A stretch of DNA of 64,000 nucleotides from Calcarisporiella thermophila CBS 279.70 (taxonomy: Eukaryota; Fungi; Calcarisporiellomycota): NCBI RefSeq assembly GCF_041956535.1, contig NW_027192215.1, positions 289,208-353,207 of the forward strand. Direction: 5' to 3'. The notes below the pieces were generated by a model, which saw only the letters and a list, made by a program, of their open reading frames with translations, searched no databases and was not told where the DNA came from. The translations under genes and the position numbers were made by a program. How positions within the stretch are numbered: position 1 is the first letter of the stretch; each line of letters opens with the position of its first letter. Below are positions 16,451-47,939 of this stretch, in pieces.

Positions 16451-17572
16451 CTAAGGATCCCTTGACATTGTATCATACGGGAACTCGTCGGTGGCTTCGG
16501 AGGATCCTGAGGCACTCTTGAGTATTTTAAAGAGCTTGTAGCGCGAGAGGGCACGAACAACCGCAGGATTGAGAAGGAAGACGATCAGATTAAGAAGACC
16601 CTGCATTCCGGTCGTGATAGCTTCTGCTCTCTGTGTCCTCAGCCCCAGCTCGGTTAACGGCTGATTGGTCAGAAAGAGCCAGTTGAGGACAAGAGAGGCA
16701 GGCTGGCAGACGACGAGCACGGTGGGATATAGGAGAATCCGCAGAACCGAGAGAATCAATTGCTTCTCTCGATCCTCCATTTCGGCCGAGATGGATCGGA
16801 GATTTTCGCGGACCACGCGCAGTGAGGTCAACACACGACAGATCACCGCGAGAATGATGCCAAACGAATAAAGGATAGAGGAGATCATCCAGATGTCGAA
16901 GCAGAAGATCTCAATCAAATACGAGGTCGTTGCATCCACATAAGTGAATATCGCGTGCTATGCATCCCATATTTTGTCAAGAGGGCTCTGGCTTTGTGTA
17001 GAGCAAAACAAACTTCAAAGCTTTACCGAATTCTTGTCCCAGAATGAATCCCCTACAAACGGGATTGGCAAGGCTAGAGAAAAGCTGGCCAGCGTGGCCA
17101 CAGGGAAATACCAGCTCTGGATTTTCTTCATGTTTTTGCGACGGCACAGGAAGGAGAGGTGTAGGTCGAAAGCAATGGAGACGGTGAGGAATGCAAACCA
17201 AATCGGAAAGGCATAAACTGTATAAAGGAGGAGTCGTGCCAGCCAGGGACGCGATGGTGTAATGGCGTCCATGACGTGGTAACTGATCCGAAGCAGGAAG
17301 AGCGCCTGTTTGAGGGGTGAATAGGTTTAGGATGGATGCTTCATTTCCAAGAAGTGGATAAAATAATCAAGCAATGGAGAAAGTAGATCACATGAAGACT
17401 TTACCCGAGACAAGGCATCCACAAGCCCAATCCATAGGGAAAGTTTGAGCGATATTGTGTTTGCAACAGAGGGCTGGCTATATCGGAGAAAGAGAACCAT
17501 GGCCATCATGATAATAGCACAAACCAGAGATGTGATGTTTAACCAGTAGAACTCATTTTGCACATCTCCCAT
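16451..17572 (-). CDS. Compact 7-TM GPCR-like receptor, subfamily A copy 1 (~317 aa)
   Basis: Exons 17572-17405, 17305-17027, 16957-16451 splice in frame. Motifs ANTISLKLSLWIGLVD, IAFDLHLSFL, LRILLYP, GMQGLLNLIVFLLNP. Confidence 0.88.
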
Positions 17573-19380
17573 ATTTTGTTTTTCTCCCCTCGGCCGATGC
17601 TGGCTGCAGAGACGGATCAATGGCGGGAGAAAGATGGACAGCTTTGGCCATGGCCCGAGAAGCCTAATTTATGGGCAATAGGGTAATTTGTGATTTTTAG
17701 GAAATCATGTTTCAGATAAGGGGCTATGGTCACAAATGGCACTGACAGATCTGAAACCAAGAGAGTATCTCTAGCCAACACTAAATATCCATATGAATGT
17801 GGGAAGAAATGGGGAGGCGTGAAAGGAAAGCCGGCTAACTTTAAACACTCTCCAGATGCCGAGTATCCATTCGTTACGGCCAGCATCCGGGGCGGCGAGA
17901 AACTTGTGTGAGAAAAAGGCTTCTTGCTCTCACACCTTCAGCGAGGAGCCGCCCCTCGGAGCAATCGAGGTTGGAGATCGCCGTAAAAGGCCCAGAACAC
18001 CCCGCGCTCTTCGGTGGGAGCATCGCGGTAAAAATTATCATTGCTCCATTTAACAGCTTCCTTCGGGGATGGCGTGCCGATGGATCCATATACTAATACC
18101 ACAAAAGGCCCTTCAAATGATGTCAGATTTATTCGAGTGATTTAGCAATAGACCACTAGAGCTTTTCATCGAGTGAAATGCTTTGGAGAAAGTTTCCCCA
18201 CCTTTGGTTTTTCACTTAAACATTGTATTACTTGCGTTATTAAGAGGGAACGGACATCCTCTTACCGCACACTTAGAGTCTATTAAAAAAATAGCGCACA
18301 TTTCATGAGCATCAAAGAATATAATAGAATCATATTCGCCTTGGGATGGAATAGAGTAATCCCGGAATCAGAAAATTATAGCATCCTTGTGTTCCTCTCC
18401 AAATATCCGTCACCAGAACACTATATCAAAAATATGAGACGGCTCAAACTGGCCTTTGTTCTGCCGTATAAATCTCAATGACGGCGTGAAATGATAGGGC
18501 ATCCTTGCACCTGTGGTTAAAATTGAGCCTATTGATATCAACAGAAAGAATTGCTGTAGAAGAAATCATCCTAACGAAAATGAAACTTTTAGTCAAATGA
18601 TTCAAAAAGCTCGCATGATTATTCAGGCTCGAGGTTTGACTTTTTTTTCATATGATCAATGTGGAGATAATATAGAACGAAAAATGGGCGCCTGGGGAGT
18701 TGTTTTCAGTCAGTGTCGAAGCGCAACCCTTTTCGTTATCACCTTATTTCCTGACTCTATTACAGGGCAAAATGAAACGCGTTCAAATTTGGCCAATACA
18801 AAAGTTATTATTAATATTATAAACTCTGTCCAACATGGCGGCAATGCCAGCAGCTTGAAACTGAAGCTAACACAATGACACTTCATTAAAGAGGCAAAGA
18901 GTGATTTACCCCGCGCTAGAATACCCACAGACCAATTTTGGGGCAGAGTATGTGAAATTAATTTCGAATCTGCACTAGTGATGCGTTGGGAAGCAGTAAT
19001 TCTATACCTCACATCACATCTGCTTGGTATGAAGGCGAGTTGCCATCTCTAGTACTTGAACTAAGAGCGGTGAATATGATATACGATCTCAACATGGTAT
19101 TATCTCAATCGCCTTGTATCGAAGGTGATTAGCTCTGTTGTCAACTAATAATACAGAGGGAACATCTGCCTTCATATCCGATTTTATTGCTCAAAATTGG
19201 GGTATCCATGCTGTTATCTTACAATAAATTATCCATAACAGAACATTTATCACAACCTACATTGCATCCTATTTTACAGTGATCCATTAAAGAATAAAGT
19301 ACCATGAGTTTTAAATTTTGAGTGTGCTCCATCTTTAGCGACTTCTCCAATCCATCTCTTAAACTTCTCCCACGCTCAAA

Positions 19381-20496
19381 TTATGCTTGCTGACTTCCTG
19401 TGAGATTAGGAGAGGGTGGGCTGCCTCCCGAGGTATTGAAAATCCTGTAGGGCGAGAGAGATCGCCCAACGGCAGGGTTGAGGAGGAATACGAGCAAATT
19501 TAGGATACCTTGCAATCCGGTCGTGATAGCTTCGGCCTGCAATACCATCAATGTGTATGGCGTCGTCTTGAGCCTCAAAAGGAAGGCCCAACTGAGAAGA
19601 ATATCCGCTGGACAGCATACCATAAGCACCATGGGGTAGAGTAGAATCCATAACACCGAATGGGTATATTGACGTCCTCTATCTTGCATGTCCACCGGCA
19701 TGGACTCAATATTCTCTTGGATAAAATGCAGGGATATGAAAACATGAATGGCCACGGCAAGCATAATGGCAACCGAGTAAAGAATAGAGGACAGAACCCA
19801 CAAGTCAAAACAGAGAATCTCGAGCGAAAGAGCAATGATAGGATCAATAGATACGGTGATAGTTTGCTACATGGATGCAAGCCCAACATTATTATCTCAT
19901 TCAGATACTGCAGCGCGTGAGACATTTCTTACTGTTTCCACGTTCCACTGTATGTTGGTGATCACAACAAACGGCGAGCTCAATAATAAGCTCGCCAACA
20001 TGGTTAGCGGACAGTACAATCTCTGGATAAACTTTATGTTATTGCGTCGGCAGAGAAAGGATAGATGCAGGTCGAATGCGATGGCGGCATTAAGGAAGAC
20101 AAACCACATTGTGGAAAAATACTTCATGTAGACTAGCAAATGAGGAGCCCACGGCATTGACGAGACAATAGAGTTCAATACAGAGGGATTGACACGAATT
20201 AAAAAGACAATCTACGCGGACAGAAAACAGAAGCTCAGCTCCTCTCATGGCACAAAATACAACAAGGGAAACTTTACGCGGGATAATATGTCGACCAGTC
20301 CAATCCAAAGCGTGAGCTTGAGTGCGATAGTATTCGCGACGTCCGGCTGCTTACACCGAAGGTATAAGACCATCCCCATCATAACAAGGGCACATACAAT
20401 AGATGCAATATGGATCCAGTTGTATTGAGTTTGGGCTGCGTGGATTATATCATGTGGAGAATTTAATGTGCTGTTTTGATTTTGCACAGAGTCCAT
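19381..20496 (-). CDS. Compact 7-TM GPCR-like receptor, subfamily A copy 2 (~327 aa)
   Basis: Exons 20496-20278, 20211-19933, 19866-19381 in frame. Same motifs and intron positions as copy 1. Confidence 0.88.
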
Positions 20497-20810
20497 AGTA
20501 TATTTTATCTATTATATCAATTTGCTCTGTGAAGAAGGGATGGAGAGGAGGGAACAATGGAACCCCTCTTTAAAAGCTTCCAAATGTGGGTTTATATCTA
20601 CAGCTACGATGTAGAGAGCGTGTCTCAGTGCTATCAGAAAGTTTTAATGATAGTTAATAATCCTTGGCAATTGCTTAATAATGCTTAAGGGCCGTTAACG
20701 GAGGTGTCCCATTTTTAATGCACGTTTTGACTTTGACATTGTAACTATTGCACTAATATTCATAGTTTTCGGTGGGAAAATCCCCCCAATAGTAATTCAC
20801 TTTACTCCAA

Positions 20811-20879
20811 AGTTAGACAAGTGTAGTTTAGACAAGTTTAGTTTAGACTAGTTTAGACAAGTTTTACGAGCTTGGACAA
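20811..20879 (+). repeat. Short imperfect tandem repeat of GTTTAGACAA-like units
   Basis: agttagacaa gtgtagtttagacaa gtttagtttagacta gtttagacaa ... cttggacaa, about 5 degenerate units. Confidence 0.6.
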
Positions 20880-21823
20880 CGGCTCTCTCCATAAAGTTAC
20901 CAATACTAAGCACGGTTTCTAATGGGCGAAAAGTAATTTTAATATACAAAGCAGGGAAGCATTAATTTCGGGGTAATGAAAGACCCAAGTGCAAGCAAAA
21001 AAGGTAGAGGTAGATTTGCTATGATCTGGAAATGGCACAATGGGATAAAATTCCCAAGAGTGGCAGGTCTCAAGTTTGTGTTCTATTGATACTTCCATTA
21101 TCATTTGAGTTTTCCCAGGTACGAAATGGACGGCTAGTTTGAGCCGGTGAATACTTGAAACTTGGGGGAGGAGGAGGTAAGTCACGAGTAGAAGAATCGT
21201 GGGCATATTATTATTTTTATGGTGAATATGAGTATACTAAACATGAAAGGGGAATAAGATGACAGCTTTCTACGCTATGAGTTAACTACTGGGGCGATTT
21301 GGTTCATTACATCTCGGGCAGAGCCAATATATTCATCCTCCCCTGATTATAATACGAAGGGTTGACAAATATTAGATAGTACAGCCAAGATTATATTACG
21401 AACACATGGAGCAAGCTACAGGGCTGCAGTAATGGCATCCAATATCACCTAGCTCTGCTATGGCAGCAAGCTTTCGACGCTATAGAATTGAAAGTAGTGA
21501 AATCTGGCCAATTAGATCCGCATTTTTCTGACGCAATTTAATAGCAACCAGGGACTGTATTCCAGGTTGTAGCAACGCCGACCGTTTTATCTAAAACCAA
21601 TGCTGTACTACAAAAGCGCTTATAATCTGAAAATGATCTTTTCGTGAAGCCATTTTGTCGATCAATCATGGATGTATATGAAGGTATCATTCAATCGATT
21701 CCATAATATGATACTGGCACTTAATTCCCTATTTTACAATGCCTCTTTTTGCAGTATTATGTACCGGAAGTTTTCGGTTTATATCAACTCCAGCGTTCAA
21801 CTTGAATCCTCGTTCACCCGTGT

Positions 21824-22942
21824 TCATACAATTGGGTTGGCTTCCGGCGTGTCTTCGGAAGAAGGCTGGTTTTTCACGCAAGTGCTGAAAATCTTGTAGC
21901 GAGAGATCGCCCGCACAACCGCAGGATTAAGAAGGAATACAAGCAAATTTAGGGCAACTTGTAGACCGGATGTTATTGCTTCGGCATGCATTAAGACGAG
22001 GAGGGTATGCGTGATCTCTTGATGCAAAAAGAAAACCCAGCCAAGAAAATTGAGAACAGGGCAGCATACCACTAGCACCAAAGGGTAGAGTAGGATGCGG
22101 AGCAATGAATAGATAAACTGGCGCTCTCTTTTTTGCGTTTCCGCCGACATGCTTCCAAGGTTTTTTCGGATGGCGCTTAGAGATTTGAGAGCATGAAATA
22201 CTACGGTGAGAATAACGGCAAATGAATACAAAATGGTCGACATCATCCAGACATCAAAACAGAGAATTTCAACAGCAAGGGCTGGTGCGAGTTCAACCGA
22301 ATTAAAAATTGAATGCTATCAATGTTTAAACACATCATTAGTATTCCAGGTGGACGATGCAGTACCTGAGTCTCTCTTTACAATTTCTGCATCCCAGTAT
22401 ATATTCCCGACGAAAGCGAATGGTAAGTTTATTATCAAACCCGCAAGCGTTGCCACAGGACAGTACAGCCTTTGCATTGGCCCAATATTATTGCGACGGC
22501 AAAGAACAGTGAGATGCAGATCGAGTGCAATTGCGGCACTGAGAAATGCAAACCACATTGGGAAAAAATGGGACGTGTATGAAAAGAGGCGAGGGGCCCA
22601 AGACACCTGGGAGACGATGAAGTTCATTGCAGCTGGATTGACTCGGATCAAAAAGTTTACCTAAAAGAACAGAAGATAAGCGTCCAGTTTGCCGCAACGC
22701 ATGCGATGCCACAAATAGGTTTTTACTCGGGACAATACGTCGGCCAATCCAATCCAGAGTGAGAGCTTTAATGATATTGTGTTCGCGATGGTAGGTTGCT
22801 TACAGCGAAGAAATAGGGCTATCACCATCATCACCAGGGCACAAGCGATAGATGTGATCTGCAGCCAGTTGTAGTGATTTTGAACAGCTCGAATTACGTG
22901 TGTAGACTCCAGTGTGCTGTTCTGATTTTGCATGGAGTCCAT
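21824..22942 (-). CDS. Compact 7-TM GPCR-like receptor, subfamily A copy 3 (~328 aa)
   Basis: Exons 22942-22727, 22660-22382, 22315-21824 in frame with family motifs. Confidence 0.88.
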
Positions 22943-24230
22943 GTTGTAGCTGTTAAAAACCGCAGGAAGTCAGCTAGCATCTTGGAGGAGGCATGAGATT
23001 AGGGAGAGAAAAGCTGCCTCCACAGTCTCAGGAACCAGGTCCAAATTAACAAGTTTAGCGAAATTAACGAAAATTCCGAGTTTCAGTTCTAAACTCGAAA
23101 TTTTCGTTAATGATTCACCCTTGTGTAAAAGTTTCAAACGATTGTGCCTTTTTCAATGCCAAATTACAATTTCTGAGAGCTACCGGTGATATAGTAGAAA
23201 CGATATGTTGACGATATATTGGGACATTGAGATAGTGTACCGACCTTTACATTCGTAGTGTTTACATAGCAATTTCATTTCGTCCACTTATTTAAAATAA
23301 AAGAATAGAGTTTAATAGACTTTTTTGAGCTATCTAAAAATTCAAATGGCAGGCCAGGTTTCTAGTGGGCGAATGCTATTAGAATCCGCGGAAAGTATCA
23401 ATTAAATCAGATTAAAAAGAAACATAAAAAACAAGCAAAAAGAGAACACTCCTGCTTTGATTTGGATAATTTAGAATAAATGTTTTTTCCTAGTGGAGTA
23501 ATGGACAAAAAATTCGCTAATCTAGTATTCTTCGTCGGGCAGTTCGCATTATCAGTATCCATTGATTAGGCGGTTGAATGTGTTTTATAATAAATGAGGA
23601 ATACCTAGGTATTTTTACGTTAAACCAAAAGCAAGGCAACCGTACAATTCTACATAAGTCAGAGGTTAAGCAATTTAAGAAAGCAACATTTGACAGCCGC
23701 TATAAACTTGTTGCCGTGAGTCAGCTGTCAGTAGAAAAATCGAATTAATTACATGTTAAACAATATGGTCATGCGATCGCTTAAACGATCCCTGTAGAAT
23801 TTCTGATCGAAGGCTAAGAAACATCTGCTTCTCAACCACACTCTAAGATTAGATCAAAGTTTGTAGTGATAGTTTATAGTTAAAGAGTTGAGAAAATCTC
23901 CAAATATTTGACGATCCTGTTAACCTCCATCTACTGTCATTAGATAGGAATATGAATGTCACCTAGGAGCTTGCATTACAAGAATATGACATCATTCCTT
24001 CTTGGAGCGATTGATTAATCTAGAAACTATGCCAATAGCTATGATTATTAAGTAATTAAAATAGCTATTGTTACTGAGTAGTTGCTTATTTATCCTACAT
24101 ATTTATCCTCAGTATATTAGAAAGATCTGAACTACTGCAGTGACTTGGGATTTAATATTGGATCCGCACGTTTATTTTTATAATAACTCCACTTGTATGC
24201 TATCTCATCCTAGCTGGAGCTTTTGAGTGG

Positions 24231-24280
24231 CAATATAAAAATCTGTATAATGTTTGATCATTATACAGATTTTTATATTG
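24231..24280. repeat. Perfect 22-bp inverted repeat with 6-nt loop
   Basis: CAATATAAAAATCTGTATAATG-tttgat-CATTATACAGATTTTTATATTG; the arms are exact reverse complements. Confidence 0.9.
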
Positions 24281-24578
24281 TCTTCTCACGTCTGCATCCA
24301 TACGAATATATCATTAAGCCAATACATTAGCGTAGAATACATGTCTCTGTAACTATTAATTGAAGGATCATTCAAAAGCTCATGATAGCATTCTATTATA
24401 GGCAATTAGGTGATCAAACGCGGGTATATGCGTCAATATCTTACAATGAATCCTATTAAAAGATACAGTAAACACGGGTTCTCCTACGTCTCCTATTTTA
24501 CATTTGATATATTTACAAGATTTTACATTATCCAACATGAATATGCCTAATTTCCAGTTTTCCTCCACATCCATCTCC

Positions 24579-25705
24579 CTACCACTGCTCCGTATTCATG
24601 ATATTTTGGTTGCCTTCATGTTCATCAGCAGAAAATAATGAATTGCTGAAGATCTTGTAATGCGAGAGGGCCCGCACGACGGCAGGATTGAGAAGAAACA
24701 CGAGCAAATTTAAGATACCTTGCAATCCAGAAGTTATTGCATCAGCGCGCATTGCTGCCATGACAGAAGGTGAAATCTCCGGATTCATATAGTAAATCCA
24801 GTCGAGAATAATGCCCGCAGGACAACATATCAAGAGCACCATAGGATAGAGCAGTATTCGTAATACGGAATAGGTAAACTGCCGCTCTCTGGCTTGCATG
24901 TCCACCGACGTGGATTCGAAATTCTCTCGGATGATGTGGAGGGATTTGAAAACGCGAAACACTACGGCGAGAATTACAGCAAATGAGTATAATATGGCGG
25001 AAGCCATCCATAAGTCGTAGCAGAAGGTTTCAAGAATAATGGCCTGTGTACGCTCTAGAGATATATAAACTATTTGCTAAAAAGGTAAAAACACATCATT
25101 AGGATTCCAGATGGTAGCTCTATCAGCTGAATCCCTCATTACAAATTCTGGATTCCAATATATATTGCCAACGAATAGGAAGGGCAGAGGGATTATTGAG
25201 CTAACTAGCGCCGCTAAGGGAGAGTAGAACCTCTGAATTATCTTGATATTAACGCGACGACAGAGGAAGGAGAGGTGTAGATCGAGCGCAATTGCGGCAC
25301 TTAGAAATGCAAACCACATTAAAAAAAAGAAGGATGTGTATACTAATAGCCGCGGAAACCAAGGTATCGTGGACACAGTAATGTTCATCAAGGAAGGATT
25401 GACGCGGATCAAAAAGTTGGCCTAGCAATACAGAAGACAAAAGCTTAGTTCTGTAATATTGGAAGATGCCCAGTTGAACCTCTTACGCGGGATAATACAT
25501 CGACTAACCCAATCCAAAGCGAGAGTTTAAGTGATATTGTGTTGGAGATGGTAGGCCGCTTACACCGAAGATAGATAGTTATCGCCATCATTATAAGGGC
25601 ACATATGATGGATATGATATGTAGCCAGCTGTATTGACTCTGTACTGTGTATGAGTAATTATGCGTAGACTCCGAGGTACGGTTTTGATTCTGCTCGATG
25701 TTCAT
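24579..25705 (-). CDS. Compact 7-TM GPCR-like receptor, subfamily A copy 4 (~331 aa)
   Basis: Exons 25705-25487, 25421-25143, 25076-24579 in frame with family motifs. Confidence 0.88.
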
Positions 25706-27176: not shown

Positions 27177-27192
27177 TTTGTCCTTGAGAAAA
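27177..27192 (+). promoter_or_regulatory. Conserved upstream element TTTGTCCTTGAGAAAA (copy 1 of 7)
   Basis: Lies 175 nt before ATG 27367; recurs at similar spacing before the other subfamily-B genes. Confidence 0.65.
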
Positions 27193-27366: not shown

Positions 27367-29824
27367 ATGAAATTCGCTATTTCAGATGGTGAATTAGCGA
27401 TTAATTTCGCGTCGGTTGTGTGCGGTACACCCATAATGATACTAGTCGTTTTACTTCGGTACACACAGCCTCAGGCCACGCGTAGCATTTCTTTCAAACT
27501 AAGCTTTTGGATTGGTCTTTCCGATGCTCTCTATCGTAGTTTCTATATTATTTACGTGGCAAGTGACTTCTTAGATGAGGTCATTCCAAACAATCTCTGG
27601 CTGGGCCGAATTATTTTTTGGTCTTTTCATTTCTTTCCTATATGGTTTTCGCTACTCACCGTGAGCATTGCTTTTGACTTGCAACTCTCGGCATTCCATA
27701 ACAAGCTCACCGTACAAAGGTATCAAAAGTGGTATCTCCCTGTATCCACCTTAGTTGCATTCGGCTTATGCTCTCCTGTGCTATTCTATGCGAGCATGGG
27801 ATATGATCCAAAACAAGTAAGCTCTTGATATTAGTTTGCACCTTATAATTACTTACCCGCTAATTCATTTATTTATTGCAGCATAGAGTCATTTATGAGT
27901 GGCCTTATGAAGCCAATCTTATCAGAGTAGTAGTTTTTATTACTGTTATCTCTCTCTGCCTCTTGTATTCCTTCACGATCATTTTCTTCTGCGCGATTAA
28001 GGTTTTCTCTACGGTATTCCGCGTAAGAAGAGAAAAGGACCATCATGGAGAGAAGAATCGCCAAAGAGAACGCCTTTTGATAATGTCTGTTCTTCGACTA
28101 CTAGGATATCCGACTGTATTTATTTTATACATGCCTGCTGAGTGTATAATGCATTATATAATTATCACTAAGACTCGCGACACACCTTTCTGAGACTTCA
28201 CAGGAAAAGCAAAGGCAATCTTGACTGGAATGATCGGTATATTCAACTTCATCATATTTTTATTTAATCCGCCTTTCTCAAATGCAGTCAGCAAATTTTT
28301 TAAGAAAACACAATGTCCACAATCCAAATCGCGAAGCATCTCATATGCATCCACTAAAATGGATGGAGGAGACAACGCGCCGCAATTTGAATCTTTTATA
28401 TGGAAAAATCCAATTAACAAGCCAGCTCTGGTAGAAGAGCAGCCTGCAACTCTTTTCAAAAAGGTTAGGTTTGTGCAGAGTTGTCCGAGAATGAAAGAGG
28501 AGTTGTTACCAAAAACCGGTGCTCAGTTGAAGGGAAATACTGCAACAAGTGCATTTGCTCTGCATCAAGTTGCATTTTCTCCATCAGATATACCAGAATC
28601 GCGTACAAGTGAAACTGGATACAGATATATAATGGGAAGGTGTTTTTGTGCAATTACAGGTTAATATTCTCATTCGCTATTGCTAAGAGCACTTAATCTC
28701 TAATATTATCTTCATAGGAATCCACTACATTCTACCAAATGATGAGGAGAGATAGAGAGGCTAATCAACCAACATTACTTCTTTCGGTACATTATTTTAT
28801 ACTTGCGAAAATCTTGAAGCATTTGTTTAAAATTCCAAACTATTAGATCATTCTTCTCCAATCGCAACTTCCAATCTCCGGTTAAAGAAAGCTTGCTGGA
28901 TGGTGCAATAGTGCTAGATGTAGGGTAAATATTGCTTATTACGACGTATATTAAACATTTTTTTCTCAACTACCTTTTGTTGTGGTTAGGTGTGGACCAG
29001 GTATATGGACCATGGAGATGGCCACAGAATACCCGAGAAGCCAGTTTCATGGCATCGACATATGCGATATGTTCCCGCAGCAAATCAGACCAGCCAACTG
29101 CCATTTTCAGATTGCGGATATCCTCAAGAGGCTACCATTTGAGGACGCGCAGTTTGACTTCATATACATTCGATGTATGAGTCTAGCAGTATTCCAGAGT
29201 GAATGGCCGGATGTGATCTCTGAGATATTCCGAATCATAAAGCCTGGAGGTTATTTGGAATTTGTCGAAGCGGGTAAGAAGAGACCGGAAGATGATTCTT
29301 TACACATAATGGCTTACATATATCACTGTAGATTATGCGATTCAATGTGACGGAAAAGCACTCCGAAAAATCACGGAAGGGAGTCAGTATATGAAATTTT
29401 GCCACAGCTTGTTTGAATATTACTAATAAGTTCTTCTCTCATGATTTTTATCGTAGTTTACAATACATTACGTGCACGAGACACTCACCCATCATGGGCG
29501 TGTAGAATCGGCGAATATTTGAGGTTCATTGGTACTGAAGATGTAAATTCCTTCTCCCATCCAATTACAGTCAGTAGTCAATCTGGTGAAGATGTGAGTT
29601 GCGGGAAAGATTATTGGATGCACTTTCTTCGTGCAATTAAGCCGCATCTTGCTCAGGTGATGTACATCAGCCCTGAGGAATATGACGAGCTGCAGCAATG
29701 CGTTTATCGAGAATTAAGTGCTGATAATATCCGCATTGATGTAGTGAGTACATATGGGTGGAAGCCATTTAAGATAATCCAGGTACGGGAGGATGACGAG
29801 CAGATAGATACGTTTTCAGGATAA
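27367..29824 (+). pseudogene. GPCR-methyltransferase fusion, pseudogenised copy
   Basis: Same 7-exon layout as 33912 and 40943. It has TGA at 28191-28193 where paralogues encode Gly (PFGD) and a 1-nt deletion near 28750 (GATGAGGAG-AGATA versus DEEEI) that shifts the frame. Downstream MTase exons remain recognisable (VLDVG/CGPGIW..HGIDI..FDFIYIR). Confidence 0.85.
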
Positions 29825-30393: not shown

Positions 30394-30925
30394 ATGAAAT
30401 TTGGATATCTGAAGAAGAATTGGCAAATAAGTTCGCTTTAATTGTATGCACTGCGCTCATTCTGTGTTAGTTTCCTCGCTACATTCAGCCTCAGGCTAGG
30501 TGTAGTACCAAACTTAGTTTTTGGACTGGCCTTTTTGATACTTTCTACCGATACATCATTTATGCGGCAGATGATTTCCACGATGAAATCATGCCAAACA
30601 ACAACCGGCTCGGTCGGATTATTGCGTAGTCTTTTTTATTATTCATGTAGTTTCCATTGCTCACTGTGATTATTATTTTCAACTTATAGATTTCAGCTTC
30701 CGCATGAAGTTCAGCTAACCTTATGGAGTATCACACAAAAATAGGAAAAGGCATAAAAGGAGAGAAGAATAGGGAGGGTCTTGTTATGAAGGCTGTGCTC
30801 CGATTCCTGGGATATCCGCTGGTACTCTATTTGCTTGCCAGCAGAATGCATGATACATTATTTAATCTTAACTATTTCTCGTAGCAAATTTTGGCGATGC
30901 CACAGGAAATGCGAAGACAATAATA
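30394..30925 (+). pseudogene. Heavily decayed subfamily-B GPCR remnant
   Basis: Frameshifted fragments match paralogues: ATGAAATTT..gaattggc, cagcctcaggct, cttagtttttggactgg, ggagagaagaatagg, ctgggatatccgctggtact, ccagcagaatgcatgatacattat, ggcgatgccacaggaaatgcgaag. Confidence 0.8.
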
Positions 30926-31769: not shown

Positions 31770-32998
31770 ATGAACTTTGCCATTACAGATGGAGAATTGG
31801 CGATTAATTTCGCGTCAGTATTTTGTGGTGCACTCATAATGATACTCGTCGTTTTCCTTCGGTACACACAGCCTCAGGCCACGCGTAGCATTTCTTTCAA
31901 ACTAAGCTTTTGGATTGGTCTTTCCGATGCTCTCTACCGCAGCTTCTATATTATATACGTGGCAAATGATTTTGTCGATGCTGTTATGCCAAACAATCTC
32001 TGGCTGGGTCGAATTATTTTTTGGTCTTTTCATTTCTTTCCTATATGGTTTTCACTACTCACCGTGAGCATTGCTTTTGACTTGCAACTCTCCACATTCC
32101 AAAACAAACTCACCGTACAAAGGTATCAAAAGTGGTATCTCCCTGTATCCACCTTAGTTGCATTCGGACTATGCTCCCCAACGTTATTCTATGGAGGTAT
32201 GGGATATGATCCAAAGCAGGTAAGTTTTATCTTTTTATAATAGTTTGCAATTTTCGGCAATTTACTCGCTATTTTATATATTTATTGCAGCATAGAGGTA
32301 TCCTTGATTGGCCTTATGAAGCCAATCTTATCAGAGTAGTAGTTTTTATTACTGTTATCTCTCTCTGCCTCTTGTATTCCTTCACGATCATTTTCTTCTG
32401 CGCGATTAAGGTTTTCTCTATGGTATTCCGCGTAAGAAGGGAAAAGGACCTCCACGGAGAGAAGAATCGTCTAAGAGAGCGCCTTATGATAATGTCTGTT
32501 CTACGACTACTAGGATATCCGGCTGTACTTATTTTATGCATGCCTGCTGAGTGTATAATGCATTATTTGATAATTACCAACACTCGCAATACATCTTTCG
32601 GAGACTCCACAGGAAAAGCGAAGGCAATTCTGACCGGAATGATCGGCATCCTCAATCTGATCATATTTTTATTCAACCCAGCTTTCTCAGGAGCCCTTAG
32701 TAATTTCAAAATATTCAAAGATGTTGAATATATGAAATATTGGAATCGGACCGCTGCCTACACAGATTATGCCAAGAAGTATCCGCATTTGCAACAAATT
32801 GCTGAAAATGCACAGGCAGATGCCAAAGCGAGTGCAAATATAAACAAATTGGACACTGGGAAATCGGATGAGCCAGAGATTTCTCGAGTGCAAGAACAAA
32901 AGATCCTACCAAATCAACACTTACTTGACGCAAAAAGAAAAGAAGATCGTATTCTTATACCCTTTTCGAGCGGGATTAGCGACTTTTCTACTCGTTAA
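31770..32998 (+). CDS. Subfamily-B 7-TM GPCR-like receptor without methyltransferase domain
   Basis: Two exons (31770-32219, 32291-32998). 7TM region nearly identical to the 27367 copy, but after FLFNP it continues AFSGALSNFKIFK into an unrelated tail and stops; no MTase exons downstream. Confidence 0.85.
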
Positions 32999-33911: not shown

Positions 33912-36381
33912 ATGAAATTTGCAATATCGAAAGGAGAGCTTGCCATTAATTTTGCCTCGATCGTATGTGCTACACTCATTATGGGACTTGTAGTTTTCCT
34001 TCGGTACACTCAACCACAGGCTACACGCAGTATTTCTTTCCGACTTAGTTTCTGGATTGGACTTGCTGATGCTCTCTACAGAAGTTTTTATATCATATAT
34101 GTGGCAAGCGAATTTATCGACTCTGTCATACCCACCAATATCTGGCTCGGTCGGATTACTGCTTGGTCATTTTATTTTTTTCCTATGTGGTTCTCTTTGC
34201 TTACAATGAGTATTGCATTTGATCTGCAACTTTCCGTATTTCACAAACACCTCAAAATACAGAGTTTTCAAAAGTGGTATTTAGCATTTGCAACTTCAGT
34301 CGCCTTCGGCTTATCCTCACCTGTGCTATTCTATGGGTCCATGACATACGATCCGAACCTGGTCAGCTTACTTCTGATATCACTCCGCTGTTTCGAAATA
34401 TTAACTTCATATAATTTCAAATAGAAAAGAGTAATTTACGAGTGGCCATATGAAGCCAATCTTGCCAGAGTAGCGGTATTCATCGCTGTCGTCTCTATCT
34501 GCATATTGTATTCCTTTTCGATCATTTTTGCATTTGTGCTTAAGGTTTTCATCATGGTATATCGCTCAAGGAGAGAAAAAGACCAACAAAGAGAGCGAGA
34601 CCGAATCAGAGAACGCCTTGTTATGATGTCTGTGCTGCGACTCCTAGGATACCCAGTAGTACTCATCTTGTGTTTGCCAGCTGAATGTATAATGCAATAT
34701 TTGATCTTTACCAATTCTCGCAACACACCATTTGGCGATACCACAGGAAGAGTGAAGGCAATCCTGACTGGAATGATCGGTATCTTCAACCTGATCATAT
34801 TTTTCTTTAACCCTTCTTTTTCAAGTGCCATCAGCGAACTTTTCAAGAAATCAACATGTCCGCAGTCTAAATCGCGAAGCATCTCATATGCATCTACTAA
34901 GTTGGATGGAGGAGACACCATTTTGCCTCATTTTGAATCCTGGATATGGAAAAATTCAAATAGAAATTCGACACCATCAGATGCAGTACTGTCTGCAGCT
35001 CGCTTCAAAAAAGTTAAATTTGCACAGGATTTGCGAGAGATAAAAGGCCAGATAGAACAAGTTACTAGCGCCCAATTGCAGCGAAATTCTACCTCAGCAA
35101 GCACAAATGCTCAGTGTCGACTAGTGTTTTCACCATCAGAGGTACCAGGATCGCACATAAATGACAATGGATACAATTGGGTAATGAGAAGGCGATTCTG
35201 TGCTGACTCAGGTTTTTATACCTATTCACATCGTCTTAGAAAATGCAATCACTGACTTGTACATCTCACAGAGATTCACTATATTTTACCAAACGATGAG
35301 GAGGAGATGAATCGGTTAATCAGTCAGCACTATTTCTTCCGGTATAGTATTTTGTAATAGTGCATATCATGAAGCATTTACTTGATATGCTTCACTATTA
35401 GATCTCTATTTTCCAATCGCAATTTCCTCTCTCCGGTTCAGGATGTCCTGAGAGATGGAGCAATGGTTCTGGATATAGGGTAAGTGTGCATTTTTAGGTG
35501 TACTTTAGTTATTTCTCCTCAGCATTCCTCTGATGTGGAAAGGTGTGGGCCAGGTACTTGGACTATGGAAATGGCTACAGAATACCCGAGAAGCCAGTTT
35601 CATGGCATCGACATATGTGATATGTTCCCACAACAAATCAAACCAGTTAACTGCCACTTTCAGATTGCGAACATACTAAAGAAGCTTTCATTTGATGATG
35701 CATCGTTTGACTTTATATACATCCGATGTATGAGCTTAGGAGTATTCCAGAGCGAATGGGTGGAGGTGATTGCAGACGTGCTCCGAATCATAAAACCTGG
35801 AGGATACATAGAATTTGTCGAAGCAGGTATTAATGCCCTAGATAATTGCAAATCGAATGAAAACCTTACTAATATATCACTTCGATTAATGTAGATTATG
35901 CGATCAAATGTGACGGTAAAGCACTCCGAAAAATCACGGATGGAAGTAAGTATATAGGTTTCCTTTTGGCTCAGCTTATTTGAATGATACTAAGGGTTTC
36001 TTAATTTTCATCACAGTTTACAACACATTACGTGCACGAGACATTCACCCGTCATGGACGCGTAGAATTGGCGAATACCTGAAATACATTGGTGTTGAAG
36101 ATGTAAATGCTTTGTCCCTGCAATTTCCAGTTAGTAGGCTATCAAGAGAAGATGGGGGCAGTGGAGTGGAATATTGGATGCAATTCCTGAGTGCAATGAG
36201 GCCACATCTTGCTCAAGTGATGTATATTAGTCCCGAAGAATACGACGATCTACAACAAAACGTCTATCAGGAATTGAGTGCAGAGCGCTTTAACATTGAT
36301 GTAGTTTGTACATATGGTCGAAAACCATTTAATATAACCCATGAAGTGGAGGATAGGCAAGTCGAAGTGCATCATAAATGA
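33912..36381 (+). CDS. GPCR-SAM-dependent methyltransferase fusion protein, intact copy 1 (694 aa)
   Basis: Exons 33912-34361, 34425-35211, 35272-35341, 35402-35479, 35543-35826, 35895-35945, 36017-36381 total 2085 nt in one open frame, all introns GT-AG. 7TM, then linker, then RRRFCADSEIHYILPNDEEEMNRLISQH..VLDIGCGPGTW..FHGIDI..FDFIYIR..KPGGYIEFVE. Confidence 0.88.
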
Positions 36382-37832: not shown

Positions 37833-37848
37833 TTTGTCCTTGAGAAAA
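37833..37848 (+). promoter_or_regulatory. Orphan copy of upstream element TTTGTCCTTGAGAAAA (copy 5)
   Basis: Exact match with flanks (agagc..., ...aactc.ataatggc) like the copy at 40754, but no plus-strand gene follows. Confidence 0.6.
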
Positions 37849-37927
37849 GTTAACTCTATAATGGCAGTAAAAAAGAGGATCAGAACACCCCCATTAACAT
37901 TTTAATATTTTCTAATAGGACACTGCC

Positions 37928-39097
37928 TCATAAAAACTTTAAGTTGTATCCGTCTGAGTAACAAGTATTGGGGGTGTTCACGCTTCCGCTGACCCTTCTA
38001 ACTCGAGCTGTAGACAGCACATTATCTGTTAGAGCCGACTTGCTCTTTAAATTATTCCATATCCATGGTTTTGTCTGAAGTATGGTATCTCCTTCATCCA
38101 ACCTGGTGGATGCATATGAGATACTTCGCGATTTTGACTGCGAATATGTTGTTTTCTTTAAAAACTCGCTGATAGCATTTGAAAAAGACGGATTAAACAA
38201 AAATATGATGAAATTGAAGACGCCTAACATTCCAGTCAAGATTGCCTTCACTTTCCCAGTAGCATTGCCCAAAGGTGTATTACGAGTGATGGTGAAATTT
38301 ACATAATGAATTATGCACTCGGCTGGCATACACAATATGAGCACTACTGGATATCCTAGTAGTCGCAGCACGGACATTATCATAAGCCGTTCTCTGAGGC
38401 GGTTCTTTTCTCCGTGGATATCTTTTTCTTTCTTCACGCGAAATACCATACTAAAAACCTTAATCACGCAAGCAAAAATGATCGTGAAGGAGTATAAAAC
38501 ACATCCAGAGATTACGCCAATGAACACCACCACTCTGGCAAGATTGGCTTCATATGGCCATTCATACGTGACTCTTTGCTATTATGTTAATAGTGTTGCT
38601 GGAATTAATATACAGAATATTAAATTTTATATCTAAGGAAAACTCGCATGTTTCGAATCGTATATCATAGTCGCATAGAAAAGAATAGGGGACGACAAAC
38701 CGAATGAGACCGTTGTTGCAAATAAAAGGTACCATTTCTGGTACTTTTGTATAGTGATTTTATGGTGAAAGACAGAAAGTTGCAGGTCAAAAGCAATGCT
38801 CACTGTAAGCAGCGAGAACCACATTGGGAAAAAGTAAAATGACCATACAAGAATTCGACCTAGCCAAATGTTATTAGGAATGACTGCATCCAGAAAATCT
38901 AGCTCTGTGTACATGATATAAAAACTCCGGTACAGAACATCAGAGAGACCAATCCAGAAGCTGAGTCTAAAGGAAACACTACGTGTGGCCTGAGGCTGTG
39001 TGAAGCGAAGAAAAGCCACAAGGATCATTATGAGAGTAGCGCAAACAATCGAGGCAAAGTTAATGGCTAGTTCACCATCGGGAATGTCGAATTTCAT
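37928..39097 (-). CDS. Inverted subfamily-B GPCR-like receptor, truncated within the fusion linker
   Basis: Two exons (about 39097-38648 and 38578-37928). Full 7TM plus linker QSKSRSISYASTRLD..WIWN..ARVRRV, then unrelated sequence and a stop; no MTase follows. Confidence 0.8.
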
Positions 39098-39260
39098 TTC
39101 CAAATACCTGTTAATAATACTTTACAAAATAATTGGTTTCATTGTTTCATGTTCTAATAATTTTGGGCTTACTTGTTTAATGAATGCAAAGATTGAAAAT
39201 GTTCTAAGCAGTTAAACTGATCAGCCTGTCTAGTTTTATACAGGCATTATTAAGGTTTAT

Positions 39261-39276
39261 TTTTCTCAAGGACAAA
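39261..39276 (-). promoter_or_regulatory. Conserved upstream element (copy 6, minus strand)
   Basis: TTTTCTCAAGGACAAA is the reverse complement of the motif, 164 nt upstream of ATG 39097. Confidence 0.65.
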
Positions 39277-39739
39277 ATACTTTATACCACTGAATCTTGT
39301 AGGTTTAATAAGGTTACCAAATTAAGCAAAGTATTGATTTGAAAATGGACAGTTTTGGTCTATATATTGTAAAGACGAATCATATATATTTAACATATCT
39401 TCAGAGAAACTATCTAAATTTTATTATTCTAATGAGTAGATATAGGATAATAATTTAAATATTTTTCAAATTATCCACTACATAATAAATAAGGGCCTTC
39501 ATCCTCAACCATTTGACCATTGTTAAACAGTAATCAGTCAGATGTACAAACTAATCTACGTGGGTTCAAATCCTACTTTCCCTATCAACGCTCACTCCTC
39601 AGTTATGGCCACTGCTCACTTAATCATTTGTGAGATTTTATTACTGGAAAGATTGCTCCTACATTGATTACATCGATTTCACCTACACGTTATTCACGGG
39701 CAACATCGATACTTATCAATCAAGATCTAGTGCCTTAAG

Positions 39740-40010
39740 AATTTGTTTATTATTACAATTAAGTGCTGAAATTATAAAATAAAATTAAAAAGTAAACATT
39801 ATACATTGAAGGTGATTAATAAAATTGTTAGTTATATAACATTCACATATGTTCTACTTTGAACCCAACCGGCATATCCTATTCTATCCCGATTATACTC
39901 TATCTGCTCATTGCCTTCCCTTACCAGGTTTATCTTAAATGGTTTCCGGCCATAGGTACTCACTACATCAATGCGGATACTCTCAGTACTTTATTCTCAA
40001 TAAATATAAA
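39740..40010 (-). pseudogene. Inverted fragment: 3' end of methyltransferase last exon plus 3' flank
   Basis: Minus strand reads STESIRIDVVSTYGRKPFKINLVREGNEQIE, matching SADNIRIDVVSTYGWKPFKIIQVREDDEQID at 29717-29810; the downstream non-coding sequence resembles 29830-29960. Confidence 0.85.
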
Positions 40011-40019
40011 TTTTTCCAC

Positions 40020-40331
40020 CAAATTACTGATGGAAGTCGGTATATGACCTTTTCCACCACTTGTTTGAATGTTACCAAGAGGGTCTTATTTTTCATCACA
40101 GTTCACAACACATTACATGCACGTGACATTAACCCATCATGGACGTGTAGAATTGGCGAATATCTGAGGTTCATCGGTGCTGAAGATGTAAATTCTCTCT
40201 CCCTGACATTTCCGTTTAATGGGCTATCTGGAGAAGATGAGAAGCTTGGAATGGATTATTGGATGCAATTTCTGAGTGCAATGAGGCCGCATCTTACTCA
40301 AGTGATGTATATCCGTCCCGAAGAATATGAC
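40020..40331 (+). pseudogene. Methyltransferase fragment (end of exon 6, intron, first part of exon 7)
   Basis: ITDG, intron, then HNTLHARDINPSWTCRIGEYLRFIG..YWMQFLSAMRPHLTQVMYIRPEEYD; homology then ends abruptly. Confidence 0.88.
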
Positions 40332-40753
40332 TATCCTATTAATTAGAGCCTATGTTGGCTCTAGGGGGTTCAAGAGCTGTAGAAAAAGGCCACCAACATA
40401 ACCTGGTGTACTTTAAGATAGGTTAGCAACTCTATATTACACTATTGGGAGAAGGGAAAATTTTGCATTGGGCTTCCTTTTGGAAGCCTCAAGAATAAAA
40501 AAGGAGTATTCATTGCATCAAAAATGAATGTATAGAATGTATATTGGTAGAGTTATTAGCTCTCAAAAAAAAAAAGGACATATTATACTACCTATTTTTC
40601 TGGACCAATCAAACTTCGTAATCCTTATTTCCGGATATATTACTGTATGTCTGATTCATCTTGGAATCTCCCAAATTATAATCAAGTATCTAGTACATAT
40701 AAAGGAAGTGTGACTTTAAAGTCTAAGTGTAACGAAGTTTTGAGATACAGAGC

Positions 40754-40942: not shown

Positions 40943-43406
40943 ATGAGGTTCGATATATCAGATGGGGAACTAGCGATCAATTTCGCGTCAATAATATGTG
41001 CTACATTTATTATGGTTCTTGTCATATTTCTTCAATATACTCAGCCCCAGGCCACACGCAGTGTCTCTTTTAGACTCAGTTTTTGGATTGGTCTCGCGGA
41101 TGCTCTCTACCGAAGTTCTTACATCATATATACCGAACTAGATTTCTTAGATGCAATCATGCCAAACCACATCTGGTTAGGTCGAGTTATTTTATGGTCT
41201 TTTCATTTCTTTCCAATGTGGTTCTCACTACTTACAGTGAGCATTGCCTTCGACCTGCAATTTTCCGTATTCCACCAGCACATACCCATACAGAGATTTC
41301 AAAGATGGTATCTCTTATTTGCAACCTTGGTCGCATTTGGCCTATCTTCTCCAGTTTTATTCTATGCAAGTATGAGATATGACGCGAATACTGTGAGTCT
41401 ACCTCACATATCAACTAATGCTCTCCAGACATGTTCCCACTAACCTTGTTCTCTATGGATTAGAAAAGAGTCATTTATGAATGGTCTTATGAGGCCAATC
41501 TTATCAGAGTAGTGGTGTTCATTATTGTTGTGTCCCTCTGCGTATTATACTCCTTCTCCATCATATTTGCCTGCGTGTTAAAAGTTTTTTTATTGATAAT
41601 TCGCGAGAGACGAGAAAAAAATCTCCACGGAGACAAGAATCGTGGTAGGGAATGGCTTGTAATGATGTCAGCTCTTCGGCTCCTTGGATATCCTCTGGTA
41701 CTCATAATATGTTTGCCACCTGAATGCATAATGCATTATATCATCATTTCCAAGACTCGCAATACAGTATTTGGTGATTTCACGGGGAGAGCGAAAGCGA
41801 TCTTAACAGGAATTCAGGGAATTCTCAATCTAATCATCTTTTTGTTCAACCCAACTTTTACAAGTGCACTGAAGGAGTTCTTCATTAACAAACCGGTGGG
41901 ATTTCCGTCAAAATCACAAAGTGTCTCCTACGCCTCGACAAGGATGAATGGGGTAGACACGATACCGCATTTTGGATCCTGGATATGGAAGCAATCTGCT
42001 AGCAAATTGGATCCCATATGTGAAAATATGTCTCCTACTTCTAAAAGGGTTAAATTTGCAAATGTACCAGAGATGAAGAAAGGAAAGATGTCAAATATTG
42101 GAGATGCATTGCAATCCAACCCCTCAATAACAGTCACATCAGATCAGAAACAGTTTGTATTTTCACCAACAGATATACCGGAATCCCAACCTAATGACCG
42201 AAACAAATGGATAATGGGACGACGGTTTTGTGCCGATTTGGGTATCTTTCATTTCATAGTGTTGCTGTGAGCATGTGATCACTGACTTTTACTATGCAGG
42301 GATACATTACATCTTGCCAAATGACGAGGAAGAGATAGACCGATTGATTAGCCAGCACTTTTTCTTTCGGTATGAATTTCATACGCATATATTAACTGAA
42401 GCATCTGCTTTAAGATTTTCCATTATTAGATCACTATTCTCCAATCGCAATTTTCTCTCTCCAGTTCAAGATATCCTGAGAGATGGAGCAATGGTTTTGG
42501 ATTTAGGGTAAGTGTGCATATACAGATGCTTTTAGATATTCTTTCTCAGCGTTTCCTATCGTTGCTAGGTGTGGACCTGGCACATGGATCATGGAGATGG
42601 CTACCGAATTCCCGAGAAGCCAGTTTCACGGCATCGACATATGTGACTTGTTCCCTCAGCAAATCAGACCGGACAATTGTCATTTCCAAGTTGCGAACAT
42701 CCTTAAGGGACTGCCGTTTGAAAACGCGCTGTTTGATTTTATATACATCCGATGCGTGAGTCTAGCAGTGTTCCAGAGCGAATGGGCTGGTGTGATTACA
42801 GAGATACTCCGAGTCCTGAAACCTGGAGGCTATTTAGAATTTGTAGAAGCGGGTAAGAGACTACCAAGAGCTAACGCGTCGCTCACAAAACTGACATATT
42901 TCACCTAACTTCTGTAGATTATGCGATTCAGTGTGAGGGGAAATCTCTCCAGAAGATTGCAGATGGAAGTCAGTTTAAAAACTTTTACCGTAGCTTATTT
43001 GAATGAGACTAAGAGGCAATTATTATTCATCATAGTTTACAACTCATTACGTGCACGAGATATTCATCCATCGTGGACACGTAGAATAGGCGAATATCTA
43101 AGGTCGATTAGCGTTGAAGATATAAGTTCTCTATCTCAGCCCTTTCTCGCTAGCATTTTCTCTGGAAAAGATGGGGAGCGTGGGGTGGTTTACTGGATGC
43201 AGTTTCTAAGTGCATTGAAGCCGCATCTTGCTCAAGTGATGTACATCAGCTCTGAAGAGTACGACGAACTACAACAATGTATCTGTCGGGAACTGAGCAC
43301 AGAGCGTATCCAAATTGATGTAGTATGTACATACGGCCGAAAATCAGGTTACATTGACCAGGCAGAGGAGAATGAAGATCAAATAGAAATATACTCGGAT
43401 GGATAA
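40943..43406 (+). CDS. GPCR-SAM-dependent methyltransferase fusion protein, intact copy 2 (693 aa)
   Basis: Exons 40943-41392, 41464-42241, 42300-42369, 42430-42507, 42569-42852, 42918-42968, 43036-43406 total 2082 nt in one frame. Exons 1 and 3-6 (450, 70, 78, 284, 51 nt) have the same sizes as copy 1. Motifs GRRFCADLGIHYILPNDEEEIDRLISQH, VLDLGCGPGTW, HGIDI, LPFENALFDFIYIR, RVLKPGGYLEFVE. Confidence 0.9.
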
Positions 43407-46767: not shown

Positions 46768-47939
46768 ATGGATGATGTACAGCAAGAGTATTTTGCGTTA
46801 AATTTAGCATCCATAGTGTGTGCATTTTCGATCATGGCCATGGTCGTATGGCTAAGATGGACACAGGTAGACATTGCCAGCACTATTTCATTCAGGCTGT
46901 CATTTTGGATAGGTTTTGTGGATGTGCTCTATCGTGTATGTATAGCCTCTTATTGATCCCCTCTTCTGCCTTCAATCGGTTCCGGGGCACTTACCATGCA
47001 TCTCCATTCGTTTGACTCAGGGCATATTTCTCTTTCGCACCAACTACTCTCTCATGGACACTCTGCTCCCCTCCCAGCCCCTGATCGTGCGTCTTCTTCT
47101 GGGATCAATCTATATCTTCCCACTTTGGTTTGCATTCCTTAATGTGACCATAGCCCTCGACTTGCACCTCTCCTTTCTCTGTCGACAATCCAATATGAAG
47201 AGGTTCCAACGTTGGTATCTTCCAGCGTCTTTCTTCGCAGCAATAGTCCTCGGAATCCCGATTATGCTAGTTGGGACACCTTACTGGGACAAGGAGCTTG
47301 TGAGTGAAGTGGCTAAAAATGTTCCCCCACCCACATCTTAGAGCTAATGTTTCGTTGTGCGTGTAATAGCACTCTGTCATGTTCGACTGGAACTTCTCTA
47401 CGTCCATCGCAATCGAGCTTCTTTGTTCAGATATATGGATGGCATTTGCGATTGTGTATGCCTTCTTCATTATTCTCGCGGTGCTCTTTCAAATCCTAAA
47501 GGATCTCAAGGCTATAAAAGTACGCACCCAAACTATTCAGTACGAATTTCGAGAGAAGGAGGGGCAACTTGTCTGCTCAGTTCTGCGAATCTTACTCTAT
47601 CCATGCGTGCTAGTCATCTGCCAGCCTGCGACCATTGTGGTTAGCTGGCTTTTCGTCACCGACACCGCGTTTACTAAGCTCGGTTCGGCAATAAGACGCA
47701 TAGAGGCGATTACGAATGGGTTGCAAGGAATTCTTAATCTCATTGTCTTTCTCATCAATCCTGCAGTTGCACGAGCACTCTGTCGTGTACCATGGATCAA
47801 AAGATTTTTAAATCGCATATTTCCAAGCAATAACCAGATCCACATGGTTGAAAACGGTGCGGCGATTGACATCATGGTTGCTCGTCTGGACAATCAAGGT
47901 GCCATGAATTCCAGCTCAAATATACCCCCTAGTGCATAA
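46768..47939 (+). CDS. Compact 7-TM GPCR-like receptor, subfamily A copy 5 (~338 aa)
   Basis: Exons 46768-46935, 47021-47299, 47370-47939 in frame. Motifs ASTISFRLSFWIGFVD, IALDLHLSFL, LRILLYP, GLQGILNLIVFLINP. Confidence 0.88.

Follow-up and report, generated by a model that had tools for sequence, protein, structure and literature searches.

The DNA analyzed here is a 64,000-nucleotide (nt) window of the genome of the fungus Calcarisporiella thermophila, which is placed in Mucoromycota. On its + strand, at 33912-36381, lies a gene in which a seven-transmembrane (7TM) receptor of G-protein-coupled receptor (GPCR) fold continues, through a linker, into a class I S-adenosylmethionine (SAM)-dependent methyltransferase. 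At the DNA level this receptor-methyltransferase fusion is confirmed, and it is highly probable, judging from the genomic evidence, that the fused protein exists. Seven spliced exons yield 694 codons plus a stop, with no internal stop, and the six introns that separate them (34362-34424, 35212-35271, 35342-35401, 35480-35542, 35827-35894, and 35946-36016) are all GT-AG, 60-71 nt long, and furnished with a branch-like CTRAY-type word. An independent spliced aligner, written for this analysis, returned identical junctions. The seven GT-AG exons and single 694-residue frame proposed in an earlier reading of the letters alone (hereafter the sequence-only reading) are thus confirmed by two splice analyses in agreement. 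A candidate intron-1 acceptor at 34429 breaks the frame and was replaced by 34424. The same reading had put the N-terminal motif of the enzyme into the exon of transmembrane helices (TM) 5 to 7; this holds for W..RRRF, which lies in exon 2, while HYILPNDEEE..RL..QH follows in exon 3, after a 60-nt intron. The motifs VLDIGCGPG, GIDI, and FDFIYIR are intact as claimed, the first of them, SAM motif I, being split by intron 4.

The join and its gene family

In every resolved fusion copy, the end of the receptor and the start of the enzyme lie within one exon. In the copy on C17, the entire 7TM domain, the linker, and the enzyme start form a single intronless open reading frame (ORF) of 427 codons. 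Across the 11 fusion copies measured, the distance from TM7 to the enzyme is held at 115-129 amino acids (aa), though linker identity is only 10-47%; linker indels keep the frame, and the linker is stop-free in all measured copies but one, itself a broken copy; when linker DNA is shuffled, 0.03% of the trials lack a stop. No linker methionine occupies a shared position and two copies have no linker methionine at all, so that a separate start for the enzyme is unlikely. In close pairs, the ratio of nonsynonymous to synonymous substitution rates (dN/dS) is 0.09-0.16 for the 7TM domain, 0.11-0.16 for the enzyme, and 0.27-0.68 for helix 8 plus linker, all rough values with dS near saturation. On the terminal branch leading to the 33912-36381 gene, changes are mostly synonymous (S) rather than nonsynonymous (N) in both domains (11 N/31 S and 7 N/21 S). 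By these measures, both domains are under purifying selection. The two domains have also been duplicated jointly. Chance adjacency of two genes is ruled out by the shared exon, the C17 ORF, the linker and selection data, and the lack of a conserved methionine. The fusion is thus supported beyond what the sequence-only reading had claimed, as a 12-locus family under selection. Public gene models join both domains at five loci (P0007, P0010, P0011, P0022, and a shortened P0020, which is the 33912-36381 gene); these are not transcript proof, because the automatic pipeline behind them used transcriptomes only where available (PMC11393059).

Receptor exon 1 is matched at least 58 times in the genome and the enzyme core exon at least 36 times. 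Fusions were resolved at twelve loci: seven intact, four broken, and one, on C10, intact save for a run of N in exon 1. The intact copies are the 33912-36381 gene, a second gene in the window (40943-43406), and one each on C4, C10, C15, C17, and C32, while the broken ones comprise 27367-29824 in the window and one each on C4, C10, and C1. Outside the 12 stand two further C10 candidates partly hidden by N; the N runs inside loci L003-L006 are unread. On the tree, fusions are scattered across the C. thermophila receptor clade, with at least five changes. Enzyme-free receptors on C25, C4, and C1 carry a homologous short tail, and the heads of enzyme-free receptors on C4 and C10 are closest to fused neighbors (81% and 77%). 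Because the short tails are homologous while the heads match fused neighbors, heads appear to have been exchanged or homogenized around helix 8, by head swapping or gene conversion. The enzyme would then behave as an optional output module, similar receptors existing with and without it. This pattern bears on the view that the receptor is merely a constitutive anchor or targeting device for an enzyme whose activity is independent of ligand. The parent enzyme family seems to need a membrane anchor, and the RGS domain alone of an Aspergillus oryzae 7TM-RGS protein rescued the mutant (PMC13308352), both in keeping with plain anchoring; yet the 7TM heads are diverse (33-73% identity, loops fastest) and apparently exchanged with unfused receptors, as expected of ligand sensors, which makes plain anchoring very improbable.

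Receptor and enzyme domains

Neither Pfam nor PDB sequence searches placed the 7TM domain: Pfam 7tm_1 reaches only 11.4 bits (cut-off 30.5), and hydropathy gives only six peaks above 1.2, TM2 being weak. Its assignment as a 7TM GPCR, made in the sequence-only reading, draws support from the fold of a paralog model. The AlphaFold model of the 66%-identical paralog P0011 (residues 1-290) has seven helices plus helix 8 at a predicted local distance difference test score (pLDDT) of 88.5; its top 50 Foldseek matches are all GPCRs, and VIA-align matches it to the orexin-1 receptor with Z 22.3 and a root-mean-square deviation of 3.4 over 272 residues. The best Atlas match of the receptor model is an unnamed Zoopagomycota cluster (TM-score 0.81). 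Motif by motif the likeness to class A ends, with DLQ for DRY, NPSF for NPxxY, and an extracellular loop 2 without Cys; on the model, then, the receptor shares the class A fold but is not a motif-level member of class A. Weak GPR_Gpa2_C matches occur in two paralogs (E 0.039; one other 0.0024). There is no direct Dicty_CAR or Git3 match, and a distant relative, P0112, passes Dicty_CAR at 23.2 bits (cut-off 21). At E<=0.001 the receptor domain has 710 relatives, which occur in Dimargaritales, Ramicandelaber, Basidiobolus, and Glomeromycota. The receptor is best called a member of a Pfam-orphan fungal GPCR-fold family near the cAMP-receptor-like/Git3 group.

Lysines plus arginines number 2, 3, 10, and 4 in loops 1, 3, 5, and the tail, versus 0, 2, and 1 in loops 2, 4, and 6. 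Together with homology to GPCR structures, these positive-inside counts favor an N-out, C-in topology with a cytoplasmic enzyme, and so bear out the cytoplasmic C-terminus proposed before. The extracellular loops are the most variable regions, while TM2, the end of TM3 with intracellular loop 2 (ICL2), TM6, and TM7 are conserved whether or not a member is fused; the TM3-end/ICL2 and TM7 motifs are common to unfused receptors of other fungi. About 15 G-alpha loci are present in the genome (on C1, C2, C4, C6, C7, C8, C13, C16, C21, C22, and C26), a large repertoire that accompanies the large receptor expansion. Since the cytoplasmic motifs of unfused relatives are kept and these G-alpha loci exist, signaling of the receptor through G proteins probably continues.

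On the enzyme side, the structure model shows the class I fold in full, helical cap included, and the Rossmann SAM-binding core, motif I, and the acidic beta-2 residue are all present. The nearest solved structures are the uncharacterized archaeal enzyme 3mgg (Z 21.4) and, next, small-molecule N-/S-methyltransferases such as OxaG and TmtA (Z 17-18), all of them likenesses of fold only. NCBIfam returned generic methyltransferases only, and these sub-threshold. The N-terminal motif GRRF...Y.LP.D..E..RL..QH is found in all copies, and we take it to mark the LaeA family, an assignment by motif. Motifs and fold together support the LaeA-like SAM-dependent methyltransferase of the sequence-only reading, and we describe the enzyme as apparently LaeA/Llm-type rather than filing it as LaeA itself.

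The fused enzymes are closest to a stand-alone one, VTP21DRAFT_11468 (P0163), which is 65% identical to the C15 copy and forms one clade with them in the tree (97/99); its features group (0.97-0.98) with Methyltransf_23/25 clusters of Mucoromycota, Ascomycota, and Basidiomycota. All five enzyme introns are common to P0163 and the fusions in position and phase, and the C-terminal tail motif of P0163 is kept in the C15 and C17 fusions. Because introns and tail motif are shared, the enzyme is, on sequence grounds, a capture at the DNA level, introns included, from the VTP21DRAFT_11468 lineage; retrotransposed capture is ruled out by the same five introns. Within a nine-member subclade, enzyme and receptor trees branch alike, and a single fusion origin is not rejected (approximately unbiased test, p 0.144). 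The MGxxxS start, which is the N-myristoylation pattern, is found in P0163, in three further stand-alone relatives, and in a homolog from Modicella; stand-alone LaeA-type methyltransferases that begin this way lie at L012, L013, L015, and L016. Since the stand-alone lineage thus starts with a myristoylation-type Met-Gly, the receptor seems to replace a lipid anchor. We infer that the parent enzyme family may already work at membranes and that fusion swapped its lipid anchor for a receptor; no paper whose title concerns lipid anchoring of the LaeA-type family was found.

Conceivably, the methyltransferase domain is a regulatory or scaffold module that binds SAM or S-adenosylhomocysteine and tunes the receptor to methyl-donor state and does not work as an enzyme. 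Methyltransferase folds that sense SAM are known, SAMTOR being one, and the cap loop has diverged in a subclade. LaeA, moreover, has no known outside substrate (PMC4299510). Set against these points, no SAM motif or N-terminal family motif differs between the fusions and their stand-alone parent, and dN/dS is ~0.11 over the whole domain, which makes such a module look improbable.

The surrounding array

The fusion gene sits in a receptor-rich array of ~35 kb in the window, the principal features of which are collected in Table 1. Four more distant enzyme-free receptors of the same family occupy 16454-25624 (- strand), and a fifth lies at 46777-47936 (+ strand), these receptors having three introns and being 28-32% identical; another likely GPCR-type exon is found near 14102-14524 (+ strand). 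At 30395-30900 is a degenerate receptor fragment with several stops and deletions, the upstream element described below still standing before it. A rearranged remnant at 37835-40346 combines an orphan upstream element (37835), the inverted half-linker receptor (39097-37928), and pieces of the last enzyme exon at 40101-40331 (+ strand) and 40005-39928 (- strand). No tRNA or Rfam family was found near the receptor array. The receptor array on C10 contains reverse-transcriptase-like ORFs of mobile elements (L005:1150-2909 and L006:9035-9961) and long N runs. Public annotation shortens both intact window fusions (VTP21DRAFT_6134 to 528 aa, VTP21DRAFT_6135 to 454 aa) and builds a model of 337 aa (P0065) by stitching together the broken copy; because of this truncation and stitching, the fusion architecture is hidden from domain surveys.

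In the younger receptor subfamily, the element TGTCCTYGAGAAA precedes start codons by 145-202 nt. It occurs in the window at 27179, 30219, 31582, 37835, 39262 (- strand), and 40756, six times versus 0.23 expected, and also at C4 copies, seven of its eight exact genome matches falling in the C25 and C4 arrays. Before the stand-alone enzyme, just the core of the element is present, in reverse, at -201.

Table 1. Coordinates of the fusion gene, its parts, and related genes (window positions unless a locus is given)
Feature	Position	Strand	Remarks
Exon 1: short N-terminus, TM1-TM4, start of extracellular loop 2 (aa 1-150)	33912..34361	+	helices from model of P0011
Exon 2: TM5-TM7, helix 8, entire linker, first methyltransferase motif W..RRRF (aa 151-412)	34425..35211	+	
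Exon 3: HYILPNDEEE..RL..QH motif (LaeA-type methyltransferases)	35272..35341	+	
Exon 4: ends within SAM motif I (first half)	35402..35479	+	
Exon 5: Rossmann core (remaining motif I, GIDI, FDFIYIR)	35543..35826	+	Pfam Methyltransf_25 E 1.5e-12
Exon 6: helical cap begins	35895..35945	+	
Exon 7: helical cap, last strand (YGRK), short tail, stop	36017..36381	+	
7TM GPCR-fold domain plus helix 8 (aa 7-290), intron 1 inside	33930..34844	+	structure model, fold searches
Disordered linker (aa 291-400)	34845..35174	+	
Conserved Ser/Thr cluster S.S.SiS.AST right after helix 8, candidate phosphorylation site	34866..34898	+	function inferred
RVxF-type motif KKVKF, candidate PP1 docking site	35007..35021	+	function inferred
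Intron 2, weak donor GTTTTT	35212..35271	+	60 nt; same position as in stand-alone parent enzyme
Putative promoter element, degenerate copy (2 mismatches) of TGTCCTYGAGAAA	33740..33752	+	
Second intact fusion gene, same six introns	40943..43406	+	identity 73% (7TM), 43% (linker), 76% (enzyme)
Broken fusion copy	27367..29824	+	stop at codon 254, frameshift near codon 423
Enzyme-free sister receptor VTP21DRAFT_6133	31770..32998	+	7TM 72% identical; unrelated short tail from helix 8 on
Inverted, truncated sister: receptor plus first half of fusion linker, enzyme absent	37928..39097	-	
Enzyme-free receptors	L001:4476-5688 (-), L003:9094-10000 (-), L009:3968-4897 (+), window 31770-32998		

Modes of action and known systems

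The linker is predicted to be disordered, with pLDDT ~30 over 106 residues. Besides the Ser/Thr cluster, it carries an RVxF-type motif aligned in all 10 linkers of the large subclade and, in the same subclade, a third short element, vFS..D.p, just before the enzyme; taken together, it resembles a receptor tail regulated by phosphorylation more closely than a rigid transducer. We favor, while giving it about an even chance, a receptor-tethered enzyme that is positioned and timed by the receptor, rather than rigid allostery. In this view, an N-terminal myristoyl group (MGxxxS) would have anchored the parent enzyme family to membranes; for the fused enzyme the receptor would serve as the new anchor, carrying it on a flexible cytoplasmic leash of ~120 residues. 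Ligand binding would alter the state of the receptor, its partners, the phosphorylation of its tail (through the Ser cluster and the PP1-type RVxF site), and its trafficking, and these changes would set the place and time at which the enzyme meets its substrate near the membrane or the receptor itself, with signaling through G proteins probably continuing in parallel. The substrate could be a membrane-near signaling protein, such as the receptor or a G protein, in a CheR-like adaptation; a small molecule or lipid is also conceivable. The capped fold resembles small-molecule methyltransferases.

The sequence-only reading had envisaged a one-component system with direct output, the rigid form of which looks less likely with ~110-125 predicted-disordered residues between TM7 and the enzyme. 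More generally, direct signaling would have the ligand activate the enzyme through receptor conformation or dimerization, without G proteins. A linker length kept within 115-129 aa and the short conserved motifs adjoining both domains would suit this, and such models have been proposed for GPCR-bigrams, that is, GPCRs fused to an accessory domain (PMC6033456); the predicted disorder, a near-neutral rate of amino acid change in the linker along terminal branches (9 N against 3 S, both small numbers), the occurrence of near-identical receptor heads with and without enzyme, and a predicted TM-score (pTM) of only 0.48 for the ESM Atlas full-protein model all speak against it, and we regard it as unlikely. 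Release of the enzyme into cytoplasm or nucleus by signal-triggered cleavage is suggested by the long exposed linker with its conserved basic patch and by Aspergillus, where the LaeA-type pair VipC-VapB is membrane-tethered to VapA and freed on signal (PMC4299510). Neither a known protease site nor a nuclear signal was found, however, and the parent enzyme appears to be permanently lipid-anchored, which points to a membrane-near substrate; release is accordingly quite unlikely.

Several observations weigh against the receptor-tethered enzyme proposed here, or against parts of it. In the 33912-36381 copy, the intron-2 donor is weak, the intron-4 acceptor purine-rich, and the upstream element degenerate, for which reasons expression of this copy is less sure than that of the family. 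A third of the resolved fusion copies are broken. The public model VTP21DRAFT_6134 (528 aa; P0020) begins at Met144 and removes 69 nt of TM5 as an intron; it was rejected, the excised 69 nt being hydrophobic, present in all paralog models, and at dN/dS 0.06 versus the neighbor copy. Public models that do join the domains may be ab initio. G-protein coupling is a prediction, and myristoylation, phosphorylation, and PP1 binding are motif-level guesses; an RVxF match arises in 3-13% of single shuffled linkers, and the motif is absent from the two deepest copies, C15 and C17. The cap loop typical of the enzyme family has diverged in the subclade of this very gene. Some of these features would also be expected if the locus gave two products, through intron-2 retention or early polyadenylation with the enzyme separate or unmade, or if it were a fresh silent pseudogene: retention of intron 2, with its GTTTTT donor, is computed to bring a stop after 14 codons and a product of receptor plus linker only, the upstream element is degenerate, and 4 of 12 copies are broken. 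But the first enzyme motif is in frame inside the receptor exon in all copies, no internal methionine is conserved, the terminal-branch changes given above are mostly synonymous in both domains, and donors in other copies are strong. This is the least probable of the alternatives considered.

A bolder extension of the tethered enzyme is a receptor family with ligand-controlled, SAM-dependent methylation output and interchangeable heads with and without enzyme, possibly including CheR-like adaptation by methylation of receptors or G proteins. We consider it possible, if doubtful. Were it true, the family would stand beside receptor kinases and cyclases as a receptor methyltransferase; if ligand-controlled, the fusion could tie an outside signal to methylation inside the cell.

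Among known systems, the closest frame is that of the GPCR-bigrams of oomycetes and other protists, whose accessory domains are PIPK, INPP, AC, PDE, TKL, and aspartic protease (PMC5784254, PMC6033456; van den Hoogen and Govers). Like these, the C. thermophila gene has an N-terminal 7TM domain and a C-terminal cytoplasmic catalytic domain, and is multi-copy beside a stand-alone enzyme. Unlike them, its accessory domain is a class I SAM methyltransferase, outside the described types, and it is fungal and found in one species only, GPCR-PIPKs being reported absent from fungi. With a 7TM GPCR fold, a catalytic-type domain in the same genomic frame, and a cytoplasmic placement by homology, the fusion would constitute a new type of GPCR-bigram. 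PMC5784254 nowhere contains the word "methyl", and neither that paper nor PMC6033456 lists a methyltransferase domain; a methyltransferase fusion is likewise absent from the 17 fungal GPCR classes reviewed in PMC13308352 and in PMC12842992, the latter a fungal GPCR classification of 2025. Full-text literature searches, with most subscription papers beyond reach, gave no precedent for the pairing, and support the apparent novelty that the sequence-only reading had asserted. No methyltransferase occurs in the best 150 of the 710 receptor relatives outside C. thermophila; a word-based search of long enzyme relatives, with few candidates and not exhaustive, gave no fusion, and an equally non-exhaustive search of metagenome contigs gave two receptor-only contigs and no fusion. 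The architecture is apparently confined to one lineage. A related 7TM receptor, P0085, continues into an AMP-binding/acyl-CoA-ligase-like region; it could be a further bigram or result from the merging of two gene models.

Fungal class VI GPCRs, the 7TM-RGS proteins GprK and GprR (PMC13308352), and plant RGS1 similarly fuse a cytoplasmic signaling domain to a 7TM protein; RGS, though, is a GTPase accelerator without chemistry of its own. The Pfam-orphan 7TM receptors of Dimargaris, Dispira, Tieghemiomyces, Basidiobolus, and Funneliformis (Zoopagomycota/Mucoromycota) are sequence relatives of the receptor domain. Bacterial CheR is a class I methyltransferase tethered non-covalently to chemoreceptor tails, with receptor glutamates as substrate. 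Both it and the C. thermophila fusion keep a class I methyltransferase near receptors by a flexible C-terminal leash, but CheR serves an unrelated receptor fold, is bound non-covalently, and has a known substrate. In the Aspergillus VapA-VipC-VapB/LaeA-Llm system (PMC4299510), LaeA-type enzymes are again kept at the plasma membrane, and it has been proposed that they act in response to an external signal; there the tether is non-covalent, through a FYVE zinc-finger protein, with no known sensor, while in C. thermophila it is covalent and itself a receptor.

Set beside these systems, the fusion makes methyl transfer one more of the few enzymatic outputs joined to receptors of GPCR fold, and it extends the occurrence of catalytic GPCR-bigram families to a fungus, on DNA evidence from one species. 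Receptor-enzyme coupling in GPCR-bigrams becomes testable in natural pairs with and without enzyme, whose heads are 72-81% identical. So does the question of LaeA-type substrates, LaeA itself having no known substrate (PMC4299510): a covalent tether confines the substrate within leash length of a known membrane protein. For both questions, C. thermophila is a small, culturable system.

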